This document shows, piece by piece, positions 5,507-34,046 of a stretch of DNA of 64,000 bases. The position numbers were made by a program, and so were the translations under genes. Numbering within the stretch: position 1 is the stretch's first letter; every line of letters begins with the position of its first letter. The notes under the pieces were generated by a model that had not been told where the DNA came from, did not search any database, and saw only the letters and a list, made by a program, of their open reading frames with translations. The DNA is taken from sequence record OZ195934.1; one strand, written 5' to 3'.

Positions 5507-5986
5507 ATGTACAAATGTAAATATTTCGAAATATATGAACTCGTAACTCCGCAGATGTATGAAGCGTGGGGCGAGAAATGTTGGCAACTATTCGACGAGC
5601 GCGTTCTAATCACGCTAGACGCTCTCAGAAAGAAGTTCGGCTCATGCGTAGTCAATGACTGGAAGTGGGGCGGAAGATTCGATGACAGCGGTTTTAGAGA
5701 CGTTCACTTCTATAGTTCAGTCGATGCGTACTTGAAGAGTCGTTCGCAGCACAAATATGGTCGCGCAGTCGATGCAAAATTCAAAGTACCCGCTCACGAA
5801 GTGCGTAAATACATATTAGAGAACCCCGACGAATTCCCACACGTGAAATTCATCGAAGTGGGTCCGTTAAAAGACGGCTCTGATATGTCATGGGTTCACA
5901 TCGATGTTCGCAACGGTGACTTGCTATGTTGGTCGCCATTAGAGGGTGTCGTTTCAAAAGAAGATGTGATTCGTCGAAAACTTTAG
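5507..5986 (+). CDS. Peptidase M15A-like Zn peptidase, candidate endolysin
   Basis: SGFR, SQHKYGRAVD, WVHIDVR motifs. Confidence 0.8.
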   Translation: MYKCKYFEIYELVTPQMYEAWGEKCWQLFDERVLITLDALRKKFGSCVVNDWKWGGRFDDSGFRDVHFYSSVDAYLKSRSQHKYGRAVDAKFKVPAHEVRKYILENPDEFPHVKFIEVGPLKDGSDMSWVHIDVRNGDLLCWSPLEGVVSKEDVIRRKL

Positions 5987-13635: not shown

Positions 13636-16600
13636 TTATACCTCATTGAACTCATTGAACATAGCGTCACCATTTGCACCGAAGCTCACATTCCCATTAT
13701 AGTCAACATCTTCACCGTAACTCGGAAGCAGGGGCATTGACTCAGAGCCAGAAAGCAACTCTTCTAGTGTCGGTTGACTGCCGTCCATTACGTCGATTCG
13801 GGGTCTATAAAAGAACTGTTCAGTGTCAGTAGCAGAGCTTTGATACATAAACGCACGCATGTAGTTTTCAGTTGCACCGTCACCCATTGCGTAGTTCGTA
13901 TTAATGCTACTCAAACGATTCCCGTCAACATCGTATATGCCATGATCAATATACGTGTCGTTGTCAGTCGTTCCGTTTGCATATACGTAAGCAACAAGAA
14001 GCACCCATTCATTGTCAAAGTAATTTGTACCGTAATCAAAGTATGGATTCGTGTTTGCAGATCCACTCAAGTTATTTGTCCTTGACCCATTACACCCAAC
14101 ATACCAGTTGCCGTTACCACTCACGCTACGTCGCATCCACAGAGTAAATCTATGATGCTTCGCAGGGTTCATATTAACGTCATGTGCATAAAATCCACCT
14201 GATTGAGTCGTCGAATCTTCTTTATAACCGCGCCACATCACGTCGTCTTCACCCCATGGGTTTTTCGCAACTGCAATGATCGCATTAGAGCCATACACAT
14301 CAAATCCCGGCTGACTTCCTGTGGTTTCTAATGTCCATGTTGAATAGTCAAGCAATCCCGGACGATAATAGCTCTCGACTATCTCACCTGCGTGCATAAC
14401 ACCATCTTTAGTAACTTGCGGCTTATGAAATCCACCAGTCGCAGCGTATTCTTTCGTGTAGTACGAAATTGAACCACTTGAAGCATCATAACGACGTCCA
14501 TCAGAGAACTGAGTCAACAACTCGCCATTCTTGATGCCGATGAAACCCCATGTACCGCGAGACGCAATCGCATGATTCTCAGTGACCCCGAAGTATCGTT
14601 CGAAATATTCACGCAGTGTACCATCTTGCGTCGTACTTGCATCACATCGAGCAGCAGTCATCAGCCAACCATCTTCCATTCGATCAATCGCGTCTTTTAG
14701 ATGATTCGCAGCGGCTTGTGCTGAATCAGGAACATCGTTTGCCGAAGCGACAATCACTTCACCGTCGAACTCGTAATATTGAGCCGTTGTTCCAGAATAC
14801 GTATCAAGACCACCGAACGCACGAAGCGTCATTGTTTGATCGAATATACAGAAGTTAATACCGCGCCAAGAGTCAATATTACCCACCTTAACACCATTCA
14901 AATACGTGCCAGTATTGCCGCTTGAGCTGCTTCGAATCATCAGCGTATTTTCACCGTCATGGTCCCAACCCTCTTGAAACTCTACTGCATGTGCATTGCC
15001 TAGATTATCAACAGACGCCTTCACGTTGTACAAACGAGAAACTTCATCGACTGACAGTGCTTTACCATGAATCGAAACTTCAGTAATATCGCCATTGAAC
15101 GTAGCACCAGTCGTACTAGAATAAGGGTGCATATTCGCGCCAATAGTCCATACGTAGTTTTCTAGCGGCTGAATCACGCCTTCGCTATCAAGCGAGTTTG
15201 CAACTTCACGCACACCATCGACAAACATGTTAGCTAATCGCGTATCGTAATCAAACGTCCATACATAGTGATGCCATTCGCCATCATTAGTATGCGTCGA
15301 ACAAATCGGGTCACTTGAACCCCAACCGTGCATTCTAAATCGATTGCCTTCAAGACACAGCAAAATAGCACCACCAGAGACTTGACTTCCCTCAGTATAA
15401 ATGCCATCATCGTATTTCATGAATGGGTTACGATTATCACCTTGTGTTGTTCTAGCCCAGAATGCAACTGATACTTGACGCGACATGTGATTCGCAGTTG
15501 TTCGAATATGTCTTCGAATATCATTCCAACCAGTACGTCCCGAAGACGGGAAGTGAAAATGACCAGAACCGCGTTCAGTGTCGTTCTCAACATAAGATGG
15601 CGCATAGTCGTATTCAAGAAGAGCATTGTTCTCTAGACCAGTCATATCAGAGACGATAACATCGTCAGCACTGAATTTGCGATATGGGTTTGCCACGTCA
15701 CGATGGCATTCAAATTGAATGTCTTTCGCTTCCATCGTCGCGCCCTCGACTGAGTAATGACCATAGAAGTAAATCGTAATAGAACGATTCACATCAGTGT
15801 CAGAGCCAACAGTCGTCGTATACGATTTGCGTTCCCATTCACCTGCAACGTTTTGCGTGTGTGTTATCTTACCAGATTCCCACTTTGTAGAGTTATCAGC
15901 TCGACGCGTGTAAAATCCAACGTTGAACGTCGCGCCAGTGTGAGTTGAACGCTGCGTCCATGAGACTGTGATTCGGTCGCCAACTTCAAGACCATAATCA
16001 ACTAAATTCCCATGACCGCATGAGATACCCATCCAACGATCCCCGTAACCAAAACGCTGATTATCATTGATATGGCGCATTACAGCTTTACCGTCAATAT
16101 TCACCCATTTCGCGTGATAGCCAATTTCCGGATCAGGGACGCCGCCATTGTAGCCACTTGACCAACTTTCACACAAGATCGCGTCTTTGTTCAGTTCAGT
16201 GTCCCATGTTCCGTTGACGTACGCAGCACCCGGTAGAAAATCAGGGTTACGCGTGCTGTTACGCGGTAGAAACTCGTTCGCCCCGTTCATGTTCCACTTT
16301 GCAACTGTCCCAAGTGCGATGTCTTTCATTTCACGATCTGAAATCGCGTTGTCGTAAAAGCGAACATCTTGCAATCGCACACGAGCACTCGTGTGAGCAA
16401 TCAATGTCACTGCCCCAGTAGGTGGTGATATATCATTCGATACGTTAAACATACGATCAAACTCTGCGTTGATGTATATGCTAACTCTCGTCGGAGTTCT
16501 GCGTATTGTTACGTGATGCCAATCAGCAATAGGCCCGACCCGATAATTGGTTGTAACAACCCCATTACCACTAGTTGCGCCATTGAACCAGTTACACCAG

Positions 16601-19197: not shown

Positions 19198-20631
19198 TTA
19201 TAAAGCGTATCGGTCGACACCGACAGTCTTCAGCATGATTTTCACTGGCTCAAGCTCACCACCCAACAGCGACGTTAGAATTGAAGGGCTGCAACCCGAC
19301 ACTAACGCTGTGTTCGCTTCACCTGATTTAACAGGCACGTTGTCTAGACGACCACGCAAGTTCCAGAACACTAGTTGCGGCATTTCGTAGCCCGCGTTCG
19401 CATACATGACTTTGATTGCATCGAAGTTCGTAGTGTTACGAGTATGCCAGCCACCGCCAGTACGAGCTTGATCGAATTCCATATCGCTCATGATAAGCAA
19501 TTTGGTTGGCATTTCGTCTTGCGACAAGTTTGCCGTACGAGCGCGTTCAAGAAGAACTTCGAAGCATCGTGTGATGTTCGTGCTCATATCTTCGCCAGAT
19601 CGTTGCATGTTGTCAAGACGCGACTTCAAGCTATCACCCGTCAACTTGTGAAAGTGCGGATCACTTGAGAACGAAATGAATTGATCTTTGAAGATACCCT
19701 CATTACGTTCAGCGACGTAGATGCCAAGAGACATCGCAACTTCTTTACAAGTCACACTACCACCGTGTTCACCGTTGATACCACAGCCCATAGAGCCAGA
19801 AACATCAACAACTGGAATCACGCGCTCGTCAGAGCCTTCCATGTAGTTCGGTAGAGCTTTCCATTGCTCATTTGCAACACGATGGTCACCCATTTTAACG
19901 CTGCGAACAACATCGTACGGGTAAACAGCACCTGCATTGATCTTCGCTTCACCTTTCACAAGCGATGTGATGTACTCACCGTATGCAGATTCAGCGTTAC
20001 GACCGAATGCTTTCTGATAGCGTGCAGACGCTACAGATGGCAGTTTGCCGAACTCGATCTCGTCCCAATTACGAGCACACATCTTCTGTTCAACAGTGTC
20101 AGACAAAAGAGAGATCACTTTACGCCACTGCTTCGCGTTTACACCAACCGACTTGATTGTGCGCTTGAACACGATAGCGTTTTTGCTGCGCTCACGAGGA
20201 AACCACTTAGCAGCAAGCGCGTTTTTGTCATTGACAATCGCGTGTGTCCACAGAGTGATAGCATCAGCTTCAAGAGAAGTACCGAACGCAGATACTAAGT
20301 CATCGAAACGACCAAGTTCTGGGATCTTGCGCATAACTAGACGCGCCACTTCTGGTTGTTCTTTACACAGACGTGCAAAGATTTTGCGGAAAGTACCGCG
20401 CTCACCTGCACCGCCACGCACGTCGCGAGACCATAGCAAGATGCGAGTTGCAAGCTCAGGGTTTTCACCGAATGCGCGATTAAACGCAGTTAGTGACTGA
20501 TCATTACCGCGCATAGCGCCGATAGTGAAGAACAAGTTTAGACACTCGTTACCCGAAGTGCTGTGTGTTACTGCACCGTTTGCTGTACGTGAATCGTTAG
20601 ATTGCATAGCGTTCATAAATAAACTAGTCAT
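19198..20631 (-). CDS. DUF2828 Ro60/TROVE-related protein with C-terminal vWA domain
   Basis: RDVRGGAGER, AAKWFPRE, VYPYDV, VVDVSGSM (MIDAS), SDMEFD, LVFWNL; GGAG SD before ATG 20631. Confidence 0.85.
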   Translation of the reverse strand: MTSLFMNAMQSNDSRTANGAVTHSTSGNECLNLFFTIGAMRGNDQSLTAFNRAFGENPELATRILLWSRDVRGGAGERGTFRKIFARLCKEQPEVARLVMRKIPELGRFDDLVSAFGTSLEADAITLWTHAIVNDKNALAAKWFPRERSKNAIVFKRTIKSVGVNAKQWRKVISLLSDTVEQKMCARNWDEIEFGKLPSVASARYQKAFGRNAESAYGEYITSLVKGEAKINAGAVYPYDVVRSVKMGDHRVANEQWKALPNYMEGSDERVIPVVDVSGSMGCGINGEHGGSVTCKEVAMSLGIYVAERNEGIFKDQFISFSSDPHFHKLTGDSLKSRLDNMQRSGEDMSTNITRCFEVLLERARTANLSQDEMPTKLLIMSDMEFDQARTGGGWHTRNTTNFDAIKVMYANAGYEMPQLVFWNLRGRLDNVPVKSGEANTALVSGCSPSILTSLLGGELEPVKIMLKTVGVDRYAL

Positions 20632-20667
20632 TGCTGTAAGCTCCAAATATCAAGGATCAGAAAAATA

Positions 20668-21258
20668 ATGTTTCATATTGTATATCAAATAACAAATTTA
20701 ATAAACAACAAAATTTACGTCGGTAAGCATTCAACCGAAAACATTCATGACGAATACATGGGTTCGGGAAAGCTTTTGCTCAGAGCCATTAAAAAGTATG
20801 GCAAGGAGAATTTCACAAAAGACATACTGTTCGTATCATTAGACGAAAAGGATGCATATAAAGCAGAACATGAGATCGTGAATGAAGATTTTGTTCTCCG
20901 TGAAGACACATATAATCTCAAAGTTGGCGGTCTTGGTGGATCATCAGGAATAGAATCTCCATGCAAAGGTCGTCAACTGAGTGAAGATACTAAACTAAAA
21001 ATGAGAAAAAGTAAACAATTTTCTCAAAAACATTTAGATTATCTCTCAACTAAATTATCTGAGTACAACAAATCTAGACAAGGTGTTCAAAGAGACGATC
21101 TAAAGGGTAACTCAAACCCAATGCATCGAGGTAATTGGCATACACCCCACGGAATATTTGAAACATCAAGCGAAGCAGCGTGTGCCATAAAATGTAGTCA
21201 ATCAACAATTGTTAGACGTTGCAAAAATCCAAATTTTGAGGATTGGTACATCAAATAA
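20668..21258 (+). mobile_element. Free-standing GIY-YIG (Seg-like) homing endonuclease
   Basis: IVYQITNLINNKIYVGKH, YMGSG, YNL; AT-rich, antisense to neighbours. Confidence 0.88.
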
Positions 21259-24852: not shown

Positions 24853-24879
24853 AAAAAAACCCGCCTAAAGAGGCGGGTT
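24853..24879 (-). terminator. Terminator ending the tRNA/ncRNA array
   Basis: AACCCGCC-TCTTTA-GGCGGGTT-T tract. Confidence 0.85.
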
Positions 24880-24893
24880 CATCGTGCATAAAC

Positions 24894-25084
24894 AGACATT
24901 CGTGAACAGTTTTAAAGTCTTTCGCATTAATCACATTTGACTTTCATGTTTAACGATACATGAATCCCTACCAACAAGTTGATAGTCGTACCTTCGAGTT
25001 TATTGCTTTAAGTCACCGAGAATGCGGCTATGCGTTACTCTATCTCTTATTTAAGTTTTGTTAGTTGGTTGCTGTACAATGTCT
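24894..25084 (-). ncRNA. Motif RNA E1 (end-paired, ACAGCAACC motif)
   Basis: 5' AGACATT-GT-ACAGCAACC ... ACG-AATGTCT 3'. Confidence 0.7.
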
Positions 25085-25094
25085 TTGCAAAATT

Positions 25095-25183: not shown

Positions 25184-25314
25184 AGTTCGGAATGCTGCTC
25201 TCATTCTCAACTACATATTTGCTCTTATCGCTGCCGTGTAGTACGAGCTTCGCAGGTTCGCTTTCGATAATTTTAAGAGCAGGGCGACTCATACCAGCTC
25301 TATTCAAGCGAACT
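25184..25314 (-). ncRNA. Putative structured RNA (~130 nt)
   Basis: AGTTCG/CGAACT, GAAT/ATTC and GCTCTTA/TAAGAGC stems in a tRNA spacer. Confidence 0.4.
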
Positions 25315-25320
25315 TGAATT

Positions 25321-25398
25321 TGGTGCCCAACCCGAGATTCGAACTCGGAACTTCTAGCGTTTGAAACTAGCGACTCTGCCAGATTGGCCTAGTTGGGC
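25321..25398 (-). tRNA. tRNA-Leu(CAA)
   Basis: Cloverleaf, loop TTCAAAC, short variable arm, CCA. Confidence 0.9.
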
Positions 25399-25404
25399 AA
25401 TGTT

Positions 25405-25481
25405 TGGTACGCGTGGGCGGATTCGAACCGCCATCCCTGAGATTTTAAGCCTCATGCCTCTGCCAATTGGACCACACGCGC
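25405..25481 (-). tRNA. tRNA-Leu(TAA)
   Basis: Cloverleaf, loop CTTAAAA, CCA. Confidence 0.92.
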
Positions 25482-25483
25482 AT

Positions 25484-25557
25484 TGGAGCTCGTACACAGA
25501 ATCGAACTGTGACCAAGTGATTTGCAATCACTTATACTACCGTTATACGATACGAGC
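25484..25557 (-). tRNA. tRNA-Cys(GCA)
   Basis: Cloverleaf, loop TTGCAAA, U73, CCA. Confidence 0.93.
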
Positions 25558-25567
25558 AAATGTACTT

Positions 25568-25644
25568 TGGGGTGACAGACGGGGACCGAACCCGCATTTT
25601 CCGGAATCACAACCCGGAGGTATTTCCACTTCACCCACTGCCAC
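25568..25644 (-). tRNA. tRNA-His(GTG)
   Basis: Loop TTGTGAT, C73; atypical T-loop TTCGGTC; flanked by TGTACTTTGG/CCAAAGTACA inverted repeat. Confidence 0.85.
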
Positions 25645-26137: not shown

Positions 26138-26429
26138 ATTGTTAATCAGACGCATTGAACAAGTCTTGAATTGCTTTCAAGTTGCTCAACTCTACTTCAA
26201 GTGTTCTTATAAAGAACGGGTTAGTCTCTACAGAGAGACGATATTCAACATCGCGAATGAATCGACCGATGTTGCCCTTGCTTAGTGTAAAGTAGTCATG
26301 CTTCTTTCTCTTCGTTTGAGGTTAGAATTAGATGAACGTGTTCGTTAACTTCTTGCTCAATCTGCCATTGTTCATAGACATATTCAGCATACAAAAGTGT
26401 TTCGTACATAATTCACCTTTCTTAAAATG

Positions 26430-26506
26430 TGGTAGTGACTCTGAGGTTCGAACTCAGTACCAGCGGCGTATGAAACCACGACTTTACCATCATAAGCTAA
26501 GTCACC
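26430..26506 (-). tRNA. tRNA-Met(CAT)
   Basis: Cloverleaf, loop TTCATAC, CCA. Confidence 0.85.
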
Positions 26507-26614
26507 AAAGCAGATATTAACGTATTTAATCAGCACACGGGCTTGACACCACATTGTTTGTGGTCTACGTGAAGAACCTCTGCACAACAATCCCGCTCTA
26601 ATTGCGTTATGTGG

Positions 26615-26920
26615 TGACTGTCACGAGGAATCTAGTCTTCTTTAAGTGCCTTTCGGCTGTAATAAAGTACAGACAATAACGAAGTGTTTTTTCGTCTTTT
26701 ACATAAATCGCAGTTGACTATCTTGTTACTCTAACAAGCAAGTATCGACTACCTCAGCGTCGCGCCTAGACTGTGTATTTCTACACGCCACATCTTTCGT
26801 TACAAGTCTCGACCTAGCACGTTGTTGCTGTGCTGAACGTCTCGAACCCACGCTAAGACCTAATCATTGTTTTAGTAGATTAGTAGTTTGGTTGCTGCAT
26901 ATTGTCTTACGTGACAGTCA
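26615..26920 (-). ncRNA. Large motif RNA E2 (nested end-pairing)
   Basis: 11-bp IR TGACTGTCACG/CGTGACAGTCA enclosing AGACAATA-TGCAGCAACC...TATTGTCT (26671-26907). Confidence 0.7.
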
Positions 26921-27002
26921 AACACACAATGCCGAAACAATATGCCGAGACGTTCACGCTCTTATTTTTCAAGTTCACACTATCGTAGTGACTCTCGTGA
27001 TA

Positions 27003-27078
27003 TGGCATCCCCAGAAAGATTTGAACTTTCAACCCCGAATTTAGAAGATTCGTGCTCTTCCAATTGAGCTATGAGGAC
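27003..27078 (-). tRNA. tRNA-Arg(TCT)
   Basis: Cloverleaf, loop CTTCTAA, CCA. Confidence 0.93.
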
Positions 27079-27550: not shown

Positions 27551-27556
27551 GAAACT

Positions 27557-27666
27557 GAGTGTCGTTTATACCGCGTCTCCAAGACCTGAGATACCAACTC
27601 AGCATGGGATTCGAACCCACCGACGTTTCTTGTATCGAAAGAAATTTTAAATTGCTGTAAACACTC
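27557..27666 (-). ncRNA. Circularly permuted tRNA-like RNA E3 (YrlA-like topology)
   Basis: GAGTGT-T-TACAGCAA, anticodon-like hairpin, GTGGG TTCGAAT CCCAT T-arm, loop-closed acceptor, D-like hairpin, AAACG-ACACTC. Confidence 0.8.
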
Positions 27667-27675
27667 TTAGTATTT

Positions 27676-28247: not shown

Positions 28248-28250
28248 CCA

Positions 28251-28340
28251 AAGATAACTCTTTGTATTAAGACACTGTAATCGTTTGGTTTTTTCTTCAA
28301 ATAAAAAATACTGGTTTGTTTGCAGAATGATTACTATCTT
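28251..28340 (-). ncRNA. Motif RNA E5 (CTGCAAAC subtype)
   Basis: AAGATAG-T-AATCATTCTGCAAAC ... GAG-TTATCTT. Confidence 0.6.
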
Positions 28341-28345
28341 AAATC

Positions 28346-30985: not shown

Positions 30986-31100
30986 TGGCTGACCGATGCG
31001 GGACTCGAACCCACGACCACGTGCTTAACAGGCAATTAGAAATGCGGTAGCGATACTTATCAATATCATTTACGTGCTCTACCACTGAGCTAATCGGTCA
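30986..31100 (-). ncRNA. tRNA-Asn(GTT)-like RNA with 38-nt insertion after nt 28
   Basis: Removing 31035-31072 restores CGTGC-CTGTTAA-GCACG arm; 8-bp acceptor, G73, CCA. Confidence 0.8.
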
Positions 31101-33005: not shown

Positions 33006-33128
33006 TGGTGGAGAGTGCGGGATTCGAACCACGCGGCCAAAAGATTTACTTAGTTAGTGTTTGCAGCATGAATACTTGACAATATTCTGTCAACGTTCTT
33101 TTGCTCTACCAGACTGAGCTAACTCTCC
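33006..33128 (-). ncRNA. tRNA-Tyr(GTA)-like RNA with ~45-nt insertion in anticodon loop
   Basis: Canonical acceptor, D and T arms; AAAGA/TCTTT stem enclosing 52 nt that end AAGTAAA. Confidence 0.8.
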
Positions 33129-33140
33129 ATTTAAAACACA

Positions 33141-33264
33141 TTGAGCAGGGTGCAGGATTCGAACCTGCGTCACGATCTTAGAATGATATGCTGTTTGGGT
33201 TGCTGAATACAAGCTATACAACTTGCGTTTATGCTACGTGTGCTAGCCACTACACCAACCCTGC
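33141..33264 (-). ncRNA. tRNA-Arg(TCT)-like RNA with 49-nt insertion after nt 28
   Basis: Removing 33188-33236 gives CGATC-ATTCTAA-GATCG; ends CAA; 17-bp flanking IR. Confidence 0.8.
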
Positions 33265-33517
33265 TCAATGTGTTCTAGTGCAATGCCATATGAACTCACA
33301 TGGCATCACTGAACCTGTTTTATATTGCCTTAGCTAACCAACACAATCTGAAATCGTGCGCTTTAATAAAGGGAGGGCGTCCCTCTTCGCCAGTTAGCAT
33401 AGATGTGTTGCTATGCACCCATTTGTCAATCATGTCCAAGGCAAACAGAACAATGAATACGAGTGCGAGAAGATATACAATCAAATTGAAACACCTCGCT
33501 AAAAAGTTAGAGCATAT

Positions 33518-33639
33518 TGGTCGTGCGTACTAGAATCGAACTAGTCCTACGATCTCCTAATGATATGCGTTATTGGTTGCTGAATACTTACTTGTCAGTA
33601 AGCGTTATGCTACGTGTGCTGCCACTACACCAACGCACG
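33518..33639 (-). ncRNA. tRNA-Leu(TAG)-like RNA with 48-nt insertion after nt 28
   Basis: Removing 33565-33612 gives CGATC-ATTAGGA-GATCG; ACCA end; 21-bp perfect flanking IR. Confidence 0.8.
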
Positions 33640-33654
33640 ACCAATATGCTCTAG

Positions 33655-33921: not shown

Positions 33922-34046
33922 ATCTTAGCAGCTTTTTCGCTGAAGTCAAACACTTTTTTCAAATTTCTTTCATCGAATCAAGAGTTTGTGTTGCTGTCTC
34001 TCGACTCGATGAAATACATTCTACAGGAAAACAAAGCGAAGTCAAC
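33922..34046 (-). promoter_or_regulatory. Two tandem early promoters heading the ncRNA array
   Basis: TTTGAC-17-TAAGAT (33922-33950) and GTTGAC-17-TAGAAT (34018-34046). Confidence 0.75.

Follow-up and report, generated by a model that had tools for sequence, protein, structure and literature searches.

A structured RNA in a phage tRNA spacer

The DNA under study is a stretch of 64,000 nucleotides (nt) from sequence record OZ195934.1 (the window), which represents a KVP40-like Vibrio phage of the 6E35.1a group (Straboviridae, "schizo-T4" type). Over the kilobase tested, it is 100% identical to Vibrio phage 6E35.1a and ~14 sister isolates. ARAGORN places 26 minus-strand tRNAs in the interval 25.1-32.6 kb of the window, and two of them, tRNA-Arg(tct) and tRNA-Met(cat), bound a spacer of 496 nt (26507-27002). 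What does this spacer encode? An initial annotation had described it as a tRNA spacer of ~500 nt without a credible open reading frame (ORF) and had read into its minus strand a large multi-domain RNA with nested long-range stems. Both flanking tRNAs were confirmed on the minus strand. Our analysis revealed that the spacer holds a conserved multi-helix structured noncoding RNA on that strand, the strand of the tRNAs; we refer to it as the A RNA.

The Met-Arg synteny is kept in 16 of 16 related phages examined, with spacers of 303-689 nt (identity to the window, 94% in K566 and 85% in D484). As the initial annotation held, no credible ORF is present: over 12 homologous spacers, stop-free stretches vary in strand, place, and length, and no ORF is conserved in strand, position, or frame. 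Public records (MW824377, OZ1957xx) draw a "hypothetical protein" coding sequence (CDS) across the spacer (window 26384-26590, minus strand). One annotated spacer CDS overlaps tRNA-Met, and the MW824377 feature table is without the tRNA-Met(cat) of 26430-26506. These CDS look spurious. A genuine small ORF is inserted at the 5' end of the spacer in nt-1. We found neither a promoter nor a terminator on the minus strand within the spacer. An Rfam search, which had been proposed as a check of novelty, returned no family for the spacer at gathering thresholds or at E≤10; at E≤10 this includes the ribozyme and ornate-RNA families as well as tRNA and YrlA. The same was true of the paralogous B copy described below and of the KVP40 and 1.081.O homologues (gathering thresholds; E≤5-10).

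Conservation is concentrated in a core of 206-243 nt, from AGACAAUA to UAUUGUCUG, which is retained in all 16 related phages and is 70-86% identical across phage genera; the flanks turn over fast. RNAalifold run on a plain MAFFT alignment of homologues, another of the checks proposed, yielded a multi-helix fold with compensatory changes in 14 of 43 pairs. We refined this fold by hand into seven helices, P1-P7, and built from it a covariance model, R1, with no B copy in the seed. R1 recovers every spacer copy in the 16 phages at 135-252 bits. When 22 sequences were aligned by fitting them to R1, 92.0% of cells formed standard pairs (79.3% in shuffles) and 30 of 51 pairs showed changes on both sides; none of 500 shuffles matched the observed pairing and covariation values. 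Pairing fell to 32-46% when the pairing partners were slid by 1-3 columns. The alignment contains UUCG and GNRA tetraloops and many G-U pairs, which would be A-C mismatches on the opposite strand and thus identify the minus strand as the RNA strand.

The inner stem of the initial annotation, an 8-base-pair (bp) pair that is an inverted repeat (AGACAATA/TATTGTCT), is conserved and covarying and corresponds to P1, which closes the seven helices. Compensatory versions occur in F86 (AGGCAAU/AUUGCCU) and 1.081.O (AGAUAAU/AUUAUCU), and in the B copies (AGACAUU/AAUGUCU), all of which have exchanged AU for UA. The possibility that the invariant AAAGAC pairs instead with the 3' strand of P1 was dropped, as F86 and 1.081.O show no compensation for it. 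Both previously noted copies of CAGCAAC are present (26891-26897 and 26824-26830). The first is conserved in J1/2, and its C-N-GCAA is invariant in 22 of 22 family members.

The second copy lies in an expansion of P3 (26808-26845) together with the T-loop-like element (GGUUCGAGAC). The hairpin claimed for it is indeed there (AGCAC/GTGCT, 26817-26835), and so is the T-loop-like element (GGTTCGAGAC, the reverse complement of 26839-26848), but the expansion is confined to the 6E35/K566/D484 lineage, being absent from KVP40, nt-1, F86, and 1.081.O, and neither the hairpin nor the element is tRNA-like (no tRNA match at E≤10).

The other helices change in sequence with their pairing kept. The P2 stem is swapped between lineages (AUUAC/GUAAU, UUAC/GUGA, AUCA/UGAU; alignment read by hand), and P4 has the counterparts CUGUCUA-GAAA-UAGUCAG in KVP40 and CUUAUG-GAAA-CAUGAG in 1.081.O, where the P6 stem is also wholly swapped, for UCACU/AGUGA. 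P7 shows CG, GC, and GU exchanges and encloses the loop UU.A.G..AAAGAC...AAAAC, which is invariant in A and B copies.

The nesting of long-range stems held for the inner stem, which is supported by evolution, and not for the outer one. The 11-bp outer pair (26615-26625/26910-26920) is present as an exact repeat (by our estimate, ~0.03 perfect 11-nt inverted repeats are expected by chance in 496 nt), and it extends to a duplex of ~20 bp with a free energy change of -29.4 (RNAduplex; 0 of 200 shuffles as stable). However, it is not conserved in relatives. Its 5' arm is swapped even in K566 and D484. Phages of the KVP40 type form another 11-bp outer helix (CAUGGUUUGAG/CUCAGACCAUG), with its 3' arm 168 nt after P1, and no outer helix was found in F86, nt-1, VH1_2019, or 1.081.O. 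Because it is absent or different in relatives, the outer stem is lineage-specific and perhaps a processing stem. The suggested pairing of CATTGT with ACAATG still further out failed: the downstream copy sits in a local hairpin, ACCACAAACAATGTGGT, and the best duplex joins the upstream GCATTGTGTG to CACATAACGC rather than to ACAATG. Within the 5' flank are a tandem 13-nt repeat (26924-26949) and one arm of an 11-nt inverted repeat (26834-26844/26946-26956) that reaches into the P3 expansion, is as long as the outer pair, and competes with the proposed nesting; the initial annotation had noted neither repeat. A module of the 3' flank is conserved with KVP40 and absent from nt-1, VS1, VS2, and 1.081.O. 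The supported part of the large multi-domain RNA is therefore the core of ~240 nt and not the whole 500 nt.

Table 1. Features of the window, ordered by position; all lie on the minus strand
Feature	Position	Strand	Evidence or remark
Gene for 482-amino-acid protein, predicted Ro60 fold	19198-20646	-	Pfam DUF2828 + DUF7788 (vWA); PHROG 850 "RNA-binding protein"
B RNA, shorter A RNA paralogue	24891-25086	-	nhmmer E 2e-8; R1 72.9 bits, E 1e-14
tRNA-Met(cat)	26430-26506	-	Bounds spacer on 3' side
3' flank module GGUUCUUCAC...ACCACAAACAAUGUGGU...GCCCGUGUGC, upstream of tRNA-Met	26507-26602	-	Alignment columns 750-822
P0 outer helix, 3' arm (lineage-specific)	26603-26626	-	Pairs with 26910-26933
A RNA core, ~240 nt, helices P1-P7	26668-26909	-	R1 186 bits, E 3e-40
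P1 closing helix, 5' strand AGACAAUA/3' strand UAUUGUCU	26900-26907/26671-26678	-	8-nt perfect repeat
J6/7 UAGUCAAC, then P7 GCGA/UCGU	26679-26720	-	P7 pairs in 100% of cells
P6 hairpin CUUGUU/AACAAG, extended by AUx/xGU	26717-26743	-	Covariation in 5/6 pairs
P5 hairpin CGAC...GUCG	26746-26762	-	Both-side changes in 4/4 pairs; 97.7% of cells pair
P4 hairpin GUGUA-GAAA-UACAC	26773-26786	-	Covaries (helix 6)
P3 long arm	26792-26859	-	RNAalifold and covariation, helices 3-5
P2 hairpin CUAAUC/GAUUAG, 12-nt loop	26860-26883	-	Minimum-free-energy fold
J1/2 signature U-G-CAGCAAC-C	26889-26899	-	Directly 3' of P1 5' strand
Variable 5' flank, tRNA-Arg to core	26910-27002	-	P0 5' arm, repeats; swapped in K566, D484
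tRNA-Arg(tct)	27003-27078	-	Bounds spacer on 5' side
Sibling motif RNA after tRNA-Gln (Gln-Thr spacer), ~115 nt	27551-27675	-	Closing helix GAGUGU/ACACUC, then UACAGCAAU
Mini motif RNA after tRNA-Trp (Trp-Asp spacer), ~65 nt	28250-28345	-	AGUAAUC-AUUCUGCAAACAAAC...GAUUAC

Related motif RNAs in the same operon

The 9.3-kb tRNA region has six occurrences of CAGCAAC on its minus strand, compared with 0.44 expected. A relaxed motif search placed its sites in the A RNA, the B RNA, a mini RNA, an element that follows tRNA-Gln, the loop of a leader hairpin that comes after two sigma-70-like promoters, and inserts of tRNA-like genes. The A RNA is the biggest of the several RNAs of the operon that share CAGCAAC, as the initial annotation had supposed. 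The A, B, mini, and post-Gln RNAs are each closed by a helix, with the motif immediately after its 5' strand and an A-rich ...AAAC run ahead of its 3' strand.

The B RNA directly follows the last tRNA-Ser(gct), and the intrinsic terminator at 24857-24880, the sole minus-strand terminator, then ends the tRNA operon. A B paralogue was found in every genome tested (R1 E 1e-13 to 1e-19), with orthologues in KVP40, nt-1, VH7D, phi-ST2, F86, and VS1; in the copies of the KVP40 type, a hairpin with a AGGAAAUG loop covaries. In the post-Gln RNA, a T-arm-like GUGGGUUCGAAUCCCAU is followed by a D-arm-like CUGAGUUGGUAUCUCAG, an arrangement that resembles YrlA, and its 1.081.O equivalent scores 34.9 bits with the Rfam tRNA model. 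The stem of the mini RNA covaries with the GCAAUC/GAUUGC copies of KVP40.

Four tRNA-like genes on the minus strand (33145-33270, 33520-33640, 33009-33128, and 30986-31100) have anticodon arms enlarged by inserts of 38-52 nt. ARAGORN recognizes these genes solely in its intron mode, with noncanonical insertion points, and their KVP40 homologues are annotated tRNA-Pseudo-4 and tRNA-Pseudo-5. Three of the inserts hold the motif (UAUUCAGCAACC twice and UGCUGCAAAC), which here follows a local hairpin. Phage D479 has three or four such genes, of 116-124 nt. The only YrlA match in the window (33070-33196, minus strand; 28 bits, E 0.001, below threshold) combines the T-arm of a tRNA-like gene with the D-arm of its neighbor and is probably an artifact of the two standing side by side.

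A Ro60-like protein encoded nearby

The same strand carries, downstream of these RNAs, a gene for a 482-amino-acid protein; the B RNA lies 4.2 kb and the A RNA 6.0 kb upstream of it. An AlphaFold2 model of the protein was obtained from 28 homologues, with a predicted local distance difference test score of 78. All 13 of its 13 best PDB matches were Ro60 over the full length (E 2e-7 to 3e-4; template modeling score, 0.4-0.62), from Thermus phage phiLo, Xenopus, Deinococcus (Rsr), and human; below these came only vWA domains. The model predicts that the window protein has a Ro60 fold.

The protein family appears to be widespread. tblastn found it in 711 phage records; among the matches listed, there is full-length identity of 30-34% to the mycobacteriophage "Ro-like RNA binding protein," and no T4 record is among the 60 of these 711 records listed. 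At least 7,900 proteins of the DUF2828 type are present in the protein database. The Ro-like gene lies within the tRNA cluster in Pseudomonas phage Astolliot and immediately precedes the tRNA cluster in the FelixO1-like phage JH2. In the window, the gene is flanked by an RNase H-like gene (PF04308; 18624-19148, minus strand) and by a GIY-YIG SegE-like endonuclease gene (20668-21258, plus strand); the RNase H-like neighbor is also found on metagenomic contig L060.

There are precedents for such proteins and their RNAs. Complexes of Ro60, a Y RNA, and PNPase are known. The Ro60 of phage phiLo binds two adjacent Y-like RNAs and the host PNPase, and the complexes attenuate PNPase (PMC12135203). 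In the Felixounavirus Bas63, gp130, which is described as Ro60-like and is encoded upstream of tRNAs, is reported to counter the ppl defense, and Y RNAs were merely speculated upon (PMC11482910); a PhageMaP preprint guessed that some Bas63 "tRNAs" are Y RNAs.

The CAGCAA module in other phages

Do other phages with Ro-like genes carry related RNAs? Weak R1 matches in the tRNA clusters of Astolliot and JH2 led to the same module. In its general form, the module consists of the closing helix P1, (U/A)NCAGCAA, and an A-rich ...AAAC before the 3' strand. The same motif in the same position was observed in JH2, AsFcp_1, D479, contigs L060 and L058, and the mycobacteriophage Whirlwind. The tRNA cluster of JH2 has four modules (AGAAGACCnnn-U-N-CAGCAA...AAAC-nnnGGUCUGG), Aeromonas phage AsFcp_1 at least two, and the T4-like contig L060 one. 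In Vibrio phage D479 (L054, ~25281-25600), a motif RNA of ~311 nt occupies a tRNA spacer (AGAAGACAGUG-UC-CAGCAAAC...AUUGUCUGG); R1 does not detect it, so its interior differs from those of the A and B RNAs. Two copies of the motif stand immediately behind a Ro-like gene on the metagenomic contig L058, with no tRNA gene called nearby.

The clearest case is Whirlwind (L063, 5486-5750): a tandem array of three modules (GGACnn-ACAGCAA...AAAC-nnGUCCAGU) starts 40 nt past its Ro-like gene. Rfam YrlA is matched by the tRNA-like core of the second module (38 bits, E 8e-7; domain at 5588-5652). A GNCGAA-like GGUCGAAG stands 3' of the D-arm in that module. The module also encloses a T-arm, an acceptor-like hairpin, and a D-arm, in this order, in JH2 (13919-14048) and L060 (880-1010). 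The distance from such modules to the Ro-like gene is 0.04-1.2 kb in JH2, L058, and Whirlwind.

The module is far more widespread than the A/B core, of which no instance was found outside KVP40-like phages in DNA-pattern scans of IMG/VR, JGI metagenomes, and GTDB genomes. These scans found only KVP40 and VH7D, the other 28 loci being chance matches. Our first, permissive module detector was uninformative because 7-bp stems are common by chance.

Comparison with known RNA systems

YrlA RNAs are defined by a permuted tRNA mimic (T-arm, acceptor-like stem, D-arm), and by the published rule, a YrlA gene shares its strand with the Ro60 gene and is no more than ~4 kb away from it (PMC4201824). Published Y RNAs act on exoribonucleases by tethering or modulating them (PMC4201824, PMC12135203). 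The A RNA resembles Y RNA/YrlA (RF02553) in several respects. A Ro60-fold protein is predicted from the same genome, with its gene on the same strand a few kilobases away. A helix of the 5' and 3' ends closes the A RNA, and the loop that it flanks has a short conserved motif on its 5' side. The window genome has several such RNAs, as is the case for Yrl1 and Yrl2 of phiLo. Siblings of the A RNA with the same module (27551-27675 and those of JH2, L060, and Whirlwind) hold the permuted tRNA mimic. Unlike the Ro60 proteins of Pfam TROVE, the window protein belongs to the DUF2828/DUF7788 branch.

The initial annotation had likened the setting of the RNA to that of the large noncoding RNAs of phage tRNA clusters. 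GOLLD and ROOL, two RNAs of that sort, are phage or prophage encoded, often near tRNA islands, and multi-helix, with no known protein partner or function (10.1101/2024.12.08.627333). The comparison holds only for the setting: GOLLD and ROOL are far larger (~580 nt and >800 nt), neither Rfam model finds a match in the spacer even at E≤10, and nothing in our analysis of the A RNA shows multimerization. By analogy, the Y RNAs of Ro60 appear to be the closer parallel.

Like the T4 species 1 and 2 RNAs (rnaC and rnaD), the A RNA is a small RNA of a tRNA operon directly after tRNA-Arg(UCU); the T4 RNAs, which are known to be stable, lie at the operon end and, unlike the A RNA, are 119 and 139 nt long. 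R1 gave no match at E≤1 in the rnaC/rnaD region (T4 69000-74000), and by the tests run, the A RNA is unrelated to these RNAs. T4 rnaD (L018, 2054-2172, minus strand) ends in ...CAUCACAGCAGAAACGGCGCACCA, which is motif-like with GCAG for GCAA, and rnaC has a T-arm and an imperfect acceptor-like stem; both likenesses may be due to chance.

Several other candidates were set aside. The consensus of the PeSL promoter/stem-loop repeats of T4-like phages (A3-4G3-loop-C3T3-4 plus TTGYVH-N17-TAWWAT; PMC4122927) differs from the motif. A MotA-box reading of TTTGCTTGTT was dropped because 1.081.O swaps the sequence but keeps the pairing. RNase P RNA, 6S RNA, tmRNA, and a tRNA-Cys anticodon-loop mimic (CUGCAAA) had no Rfam or structural support, and the GGA and ARN repeats of a CsrA or Hfq sponge are not conserved in the A RNA of the window.

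A candidate partner of the Ro60-like protein

How might the A RNA function? We consider that it is probably a stable, trans-acting RNA, a Y-RNA-like partner of the phage's own Ro60-like protein that is excised from a tRNA precursor. It would be transcribed within the long precursor of the tRNA operon, freed as the flanking tRNAs mature, and trimmed back to P1. Since the spacer contains no minus-strand promoter or terminator, the RNA is presumably cut out by the enzymes that mature the flanking tRNAs. The Ro60-like protein (gene at 19198-20646) would then bind it at the module (P1, (U/A)NCAGCAA, and ...AAAC), which would stand in for the GNCGAA/GGUCCGA stem-loop of Y RNAs. The interior of ~190 nt (P2-P7) would be the effector part and, as in the Ro60-Y RNA system, might recruit, tether, gate, or sequester a host RNA-handling factor (for example, an exoribonuclease) or damaged RNA during infection. 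The most economical reading of the sequence comparisons suggests that the module is the recognition module of the DUF2828-type phage Ro60, and we propose the J1/2 signature as the counterpart of the Ro-binding motif. The A RNA would be the largest member of a Y-like family, with a seven-helix domain in place of the tRNA mimic.

A number of observations weigh against this proposal. The 5' motif of the A RNA (U-R-CAGCAAC, within the general (U/A)NCAGCAA) is not the GNCGAAN0-1G of Y RNAs; GACGAA is confined to the P7 loop and is not kept by the B copies. Unlike YrlA, the A RNA has no tRNA-like domain and instead a seven-helix interior, and it lies between tRNAs, 6 kb from the protein gene rather than within 4 kb. 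Rfam YrlA (gathering threshold, 69 bits) has no match at the A or B locus, and the A RNA is not a member of that family. Astolliot has only a variant of the motif, ACAGCAC. A strict detector, which we wrote ourselves, lends the proposal modest support: it counted 13 sense and 3 antisense modules in 256 kb of Ro loci, compared with 4 in 347 kb of unrelated control DNA. Elements that live in tRNA clusters could also share the module through common descent and not through a shared protein partner. As for the structure, the 22-sequence alignment was fitted to R1, which is why the independent MAFFT/RNAalifold result matters, and the fold energy of single sequences barely beats that of shuffles, without significance (z, -1.6 and -1.2). 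As for transcripts, no RNA sequencing run is listed for the window. Contigs of a KVP40 relative in an oligo-dT seawater RNA library cover the spacer, but they are weak evidence, as this library may contain DNA. No spacer reads were found in two RNA sequencing runs that share a species label with a run bearing KVP40-like sequence.

The best surviving alternative, which we regard as unlikely, is a stable tRNA-operon RNA whose action does not involve the Ro60-like protein, the shared module being merely a result of paralogy or a processing signal. Such an RNA might be a counterpart of T4 species 1 and 2, a decoy or sponge for a host nuclease or RNA chaperone, a self-assembling ornate RNA, or an unrecognized ribozyme. 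All structural evidence presented here fits it equally. The place after tRNA-Arg(UCU) mirrors T4, in which rnaD and rnaC follow tRNA-Arg and have roles still described as unknown (PMC3014915), and GOLLD and ROOL are precedents for RNAs near tRNA islands with no known protein partner (10.1101/2024.12.08.627333). However, the module also stands directly behind Ro-like genes where no tRNA cluster was called nearby (L058 and Whirlwind), which is not expected of elements tied only to tRNA operons. The negative results with R1 in T4 rnaC/rnaD and with the Rfam ribozyme and ornate families also argue against this alternative.

Could the spacer instead act in cis, as a folded element that steers or insulates the processing of adjacent tRNAs by RNase III, E, or P and has no life after cleavage? 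Its position inside a polycistronic tRNA operon with neither promoter nor terminator of its own would suit such a role, as would its hairpin-rich flanks and outer duplexes (~20 bp in the window and 11 bp in KVP40), which are possible RNase III substrates. Yet these duplexes are not conserved, and the part that is conserved is an internal core with invariant unpaired segments. Moreover, the B copy follows the last tRNA, with nothing downstream to process, and related modules occur outside tRNA clusters. We find this explanation quite improbable.

Almost no credence can be given to functionless decay (of degenerate tRNAs or a homing endonuclease or other mobile remnant) or to a small unannotated protein gene: the "hypothetical protein" CDS of public records, the small ORF of nt-1, and the quick turnover and repeats of the 5' flank are in their favor, but the core keeps its identity across genera with changes that preserve pairing, no ORF is conserved over the homologous spacers and one annotated CDS runs into tRNA-Met, and a decayed tRNA or tRNA pseudogene is contradicted by the absence of a cloverleaf (ARAGORN, RF00005) or any tRNA signal at E≤10 and by the place of GGTTCGAGAC within a lineage-specific insertion.

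Implications for phage Ro60 systems

Y RNAs beside Ro60 genes are already known, including in phages. In the literature searched, we found no description of the CAGCAA module, of the A/B family, or of partner RNAs for the DUF2828 proteins of vibriophages and FelixO1-like phages. The A RNA adds a well-supported structured RNA family of 22 sequences, with two paralogues per genome. A broader reading, which we offer tentatively, is that the CAGCAA module may mark a large class of Y-like RNAs serving DUF2828-type phage Ro60, with the A and B RNAs as its first ornate members without a tRNA-like domain and the seven-helix interior as a new effector domain. If so, damaged tRNA, a host exoribonuclease, or a defense factor might be captured by this domain, which would tie phage tRNA islands to RNA repair and counter-defense.

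Ro60-like proteins are widespread in large lytic phages with tRNA clusters, and the signature points to candidates for their partner RNAs in vibriophages, FelixO1-like coliphages, Aeromonas phages, and mycobacteriophages, which makes the question of a partner for Bas63 gp130 testable. Some of the "spacer" DNA left unannotated in phage tRNA islands would likewise be explained by the module.

Upstream of the tRNA region, two sigma-70-like promoters are present on the minus strand (window 33950-34045; TTGACT-N17-TAGAAT and TTGACT-N16-TAAGAT). The first is followed by a 17-bp hairpin with a 13-nt loop, ACAGCAACACAAA.

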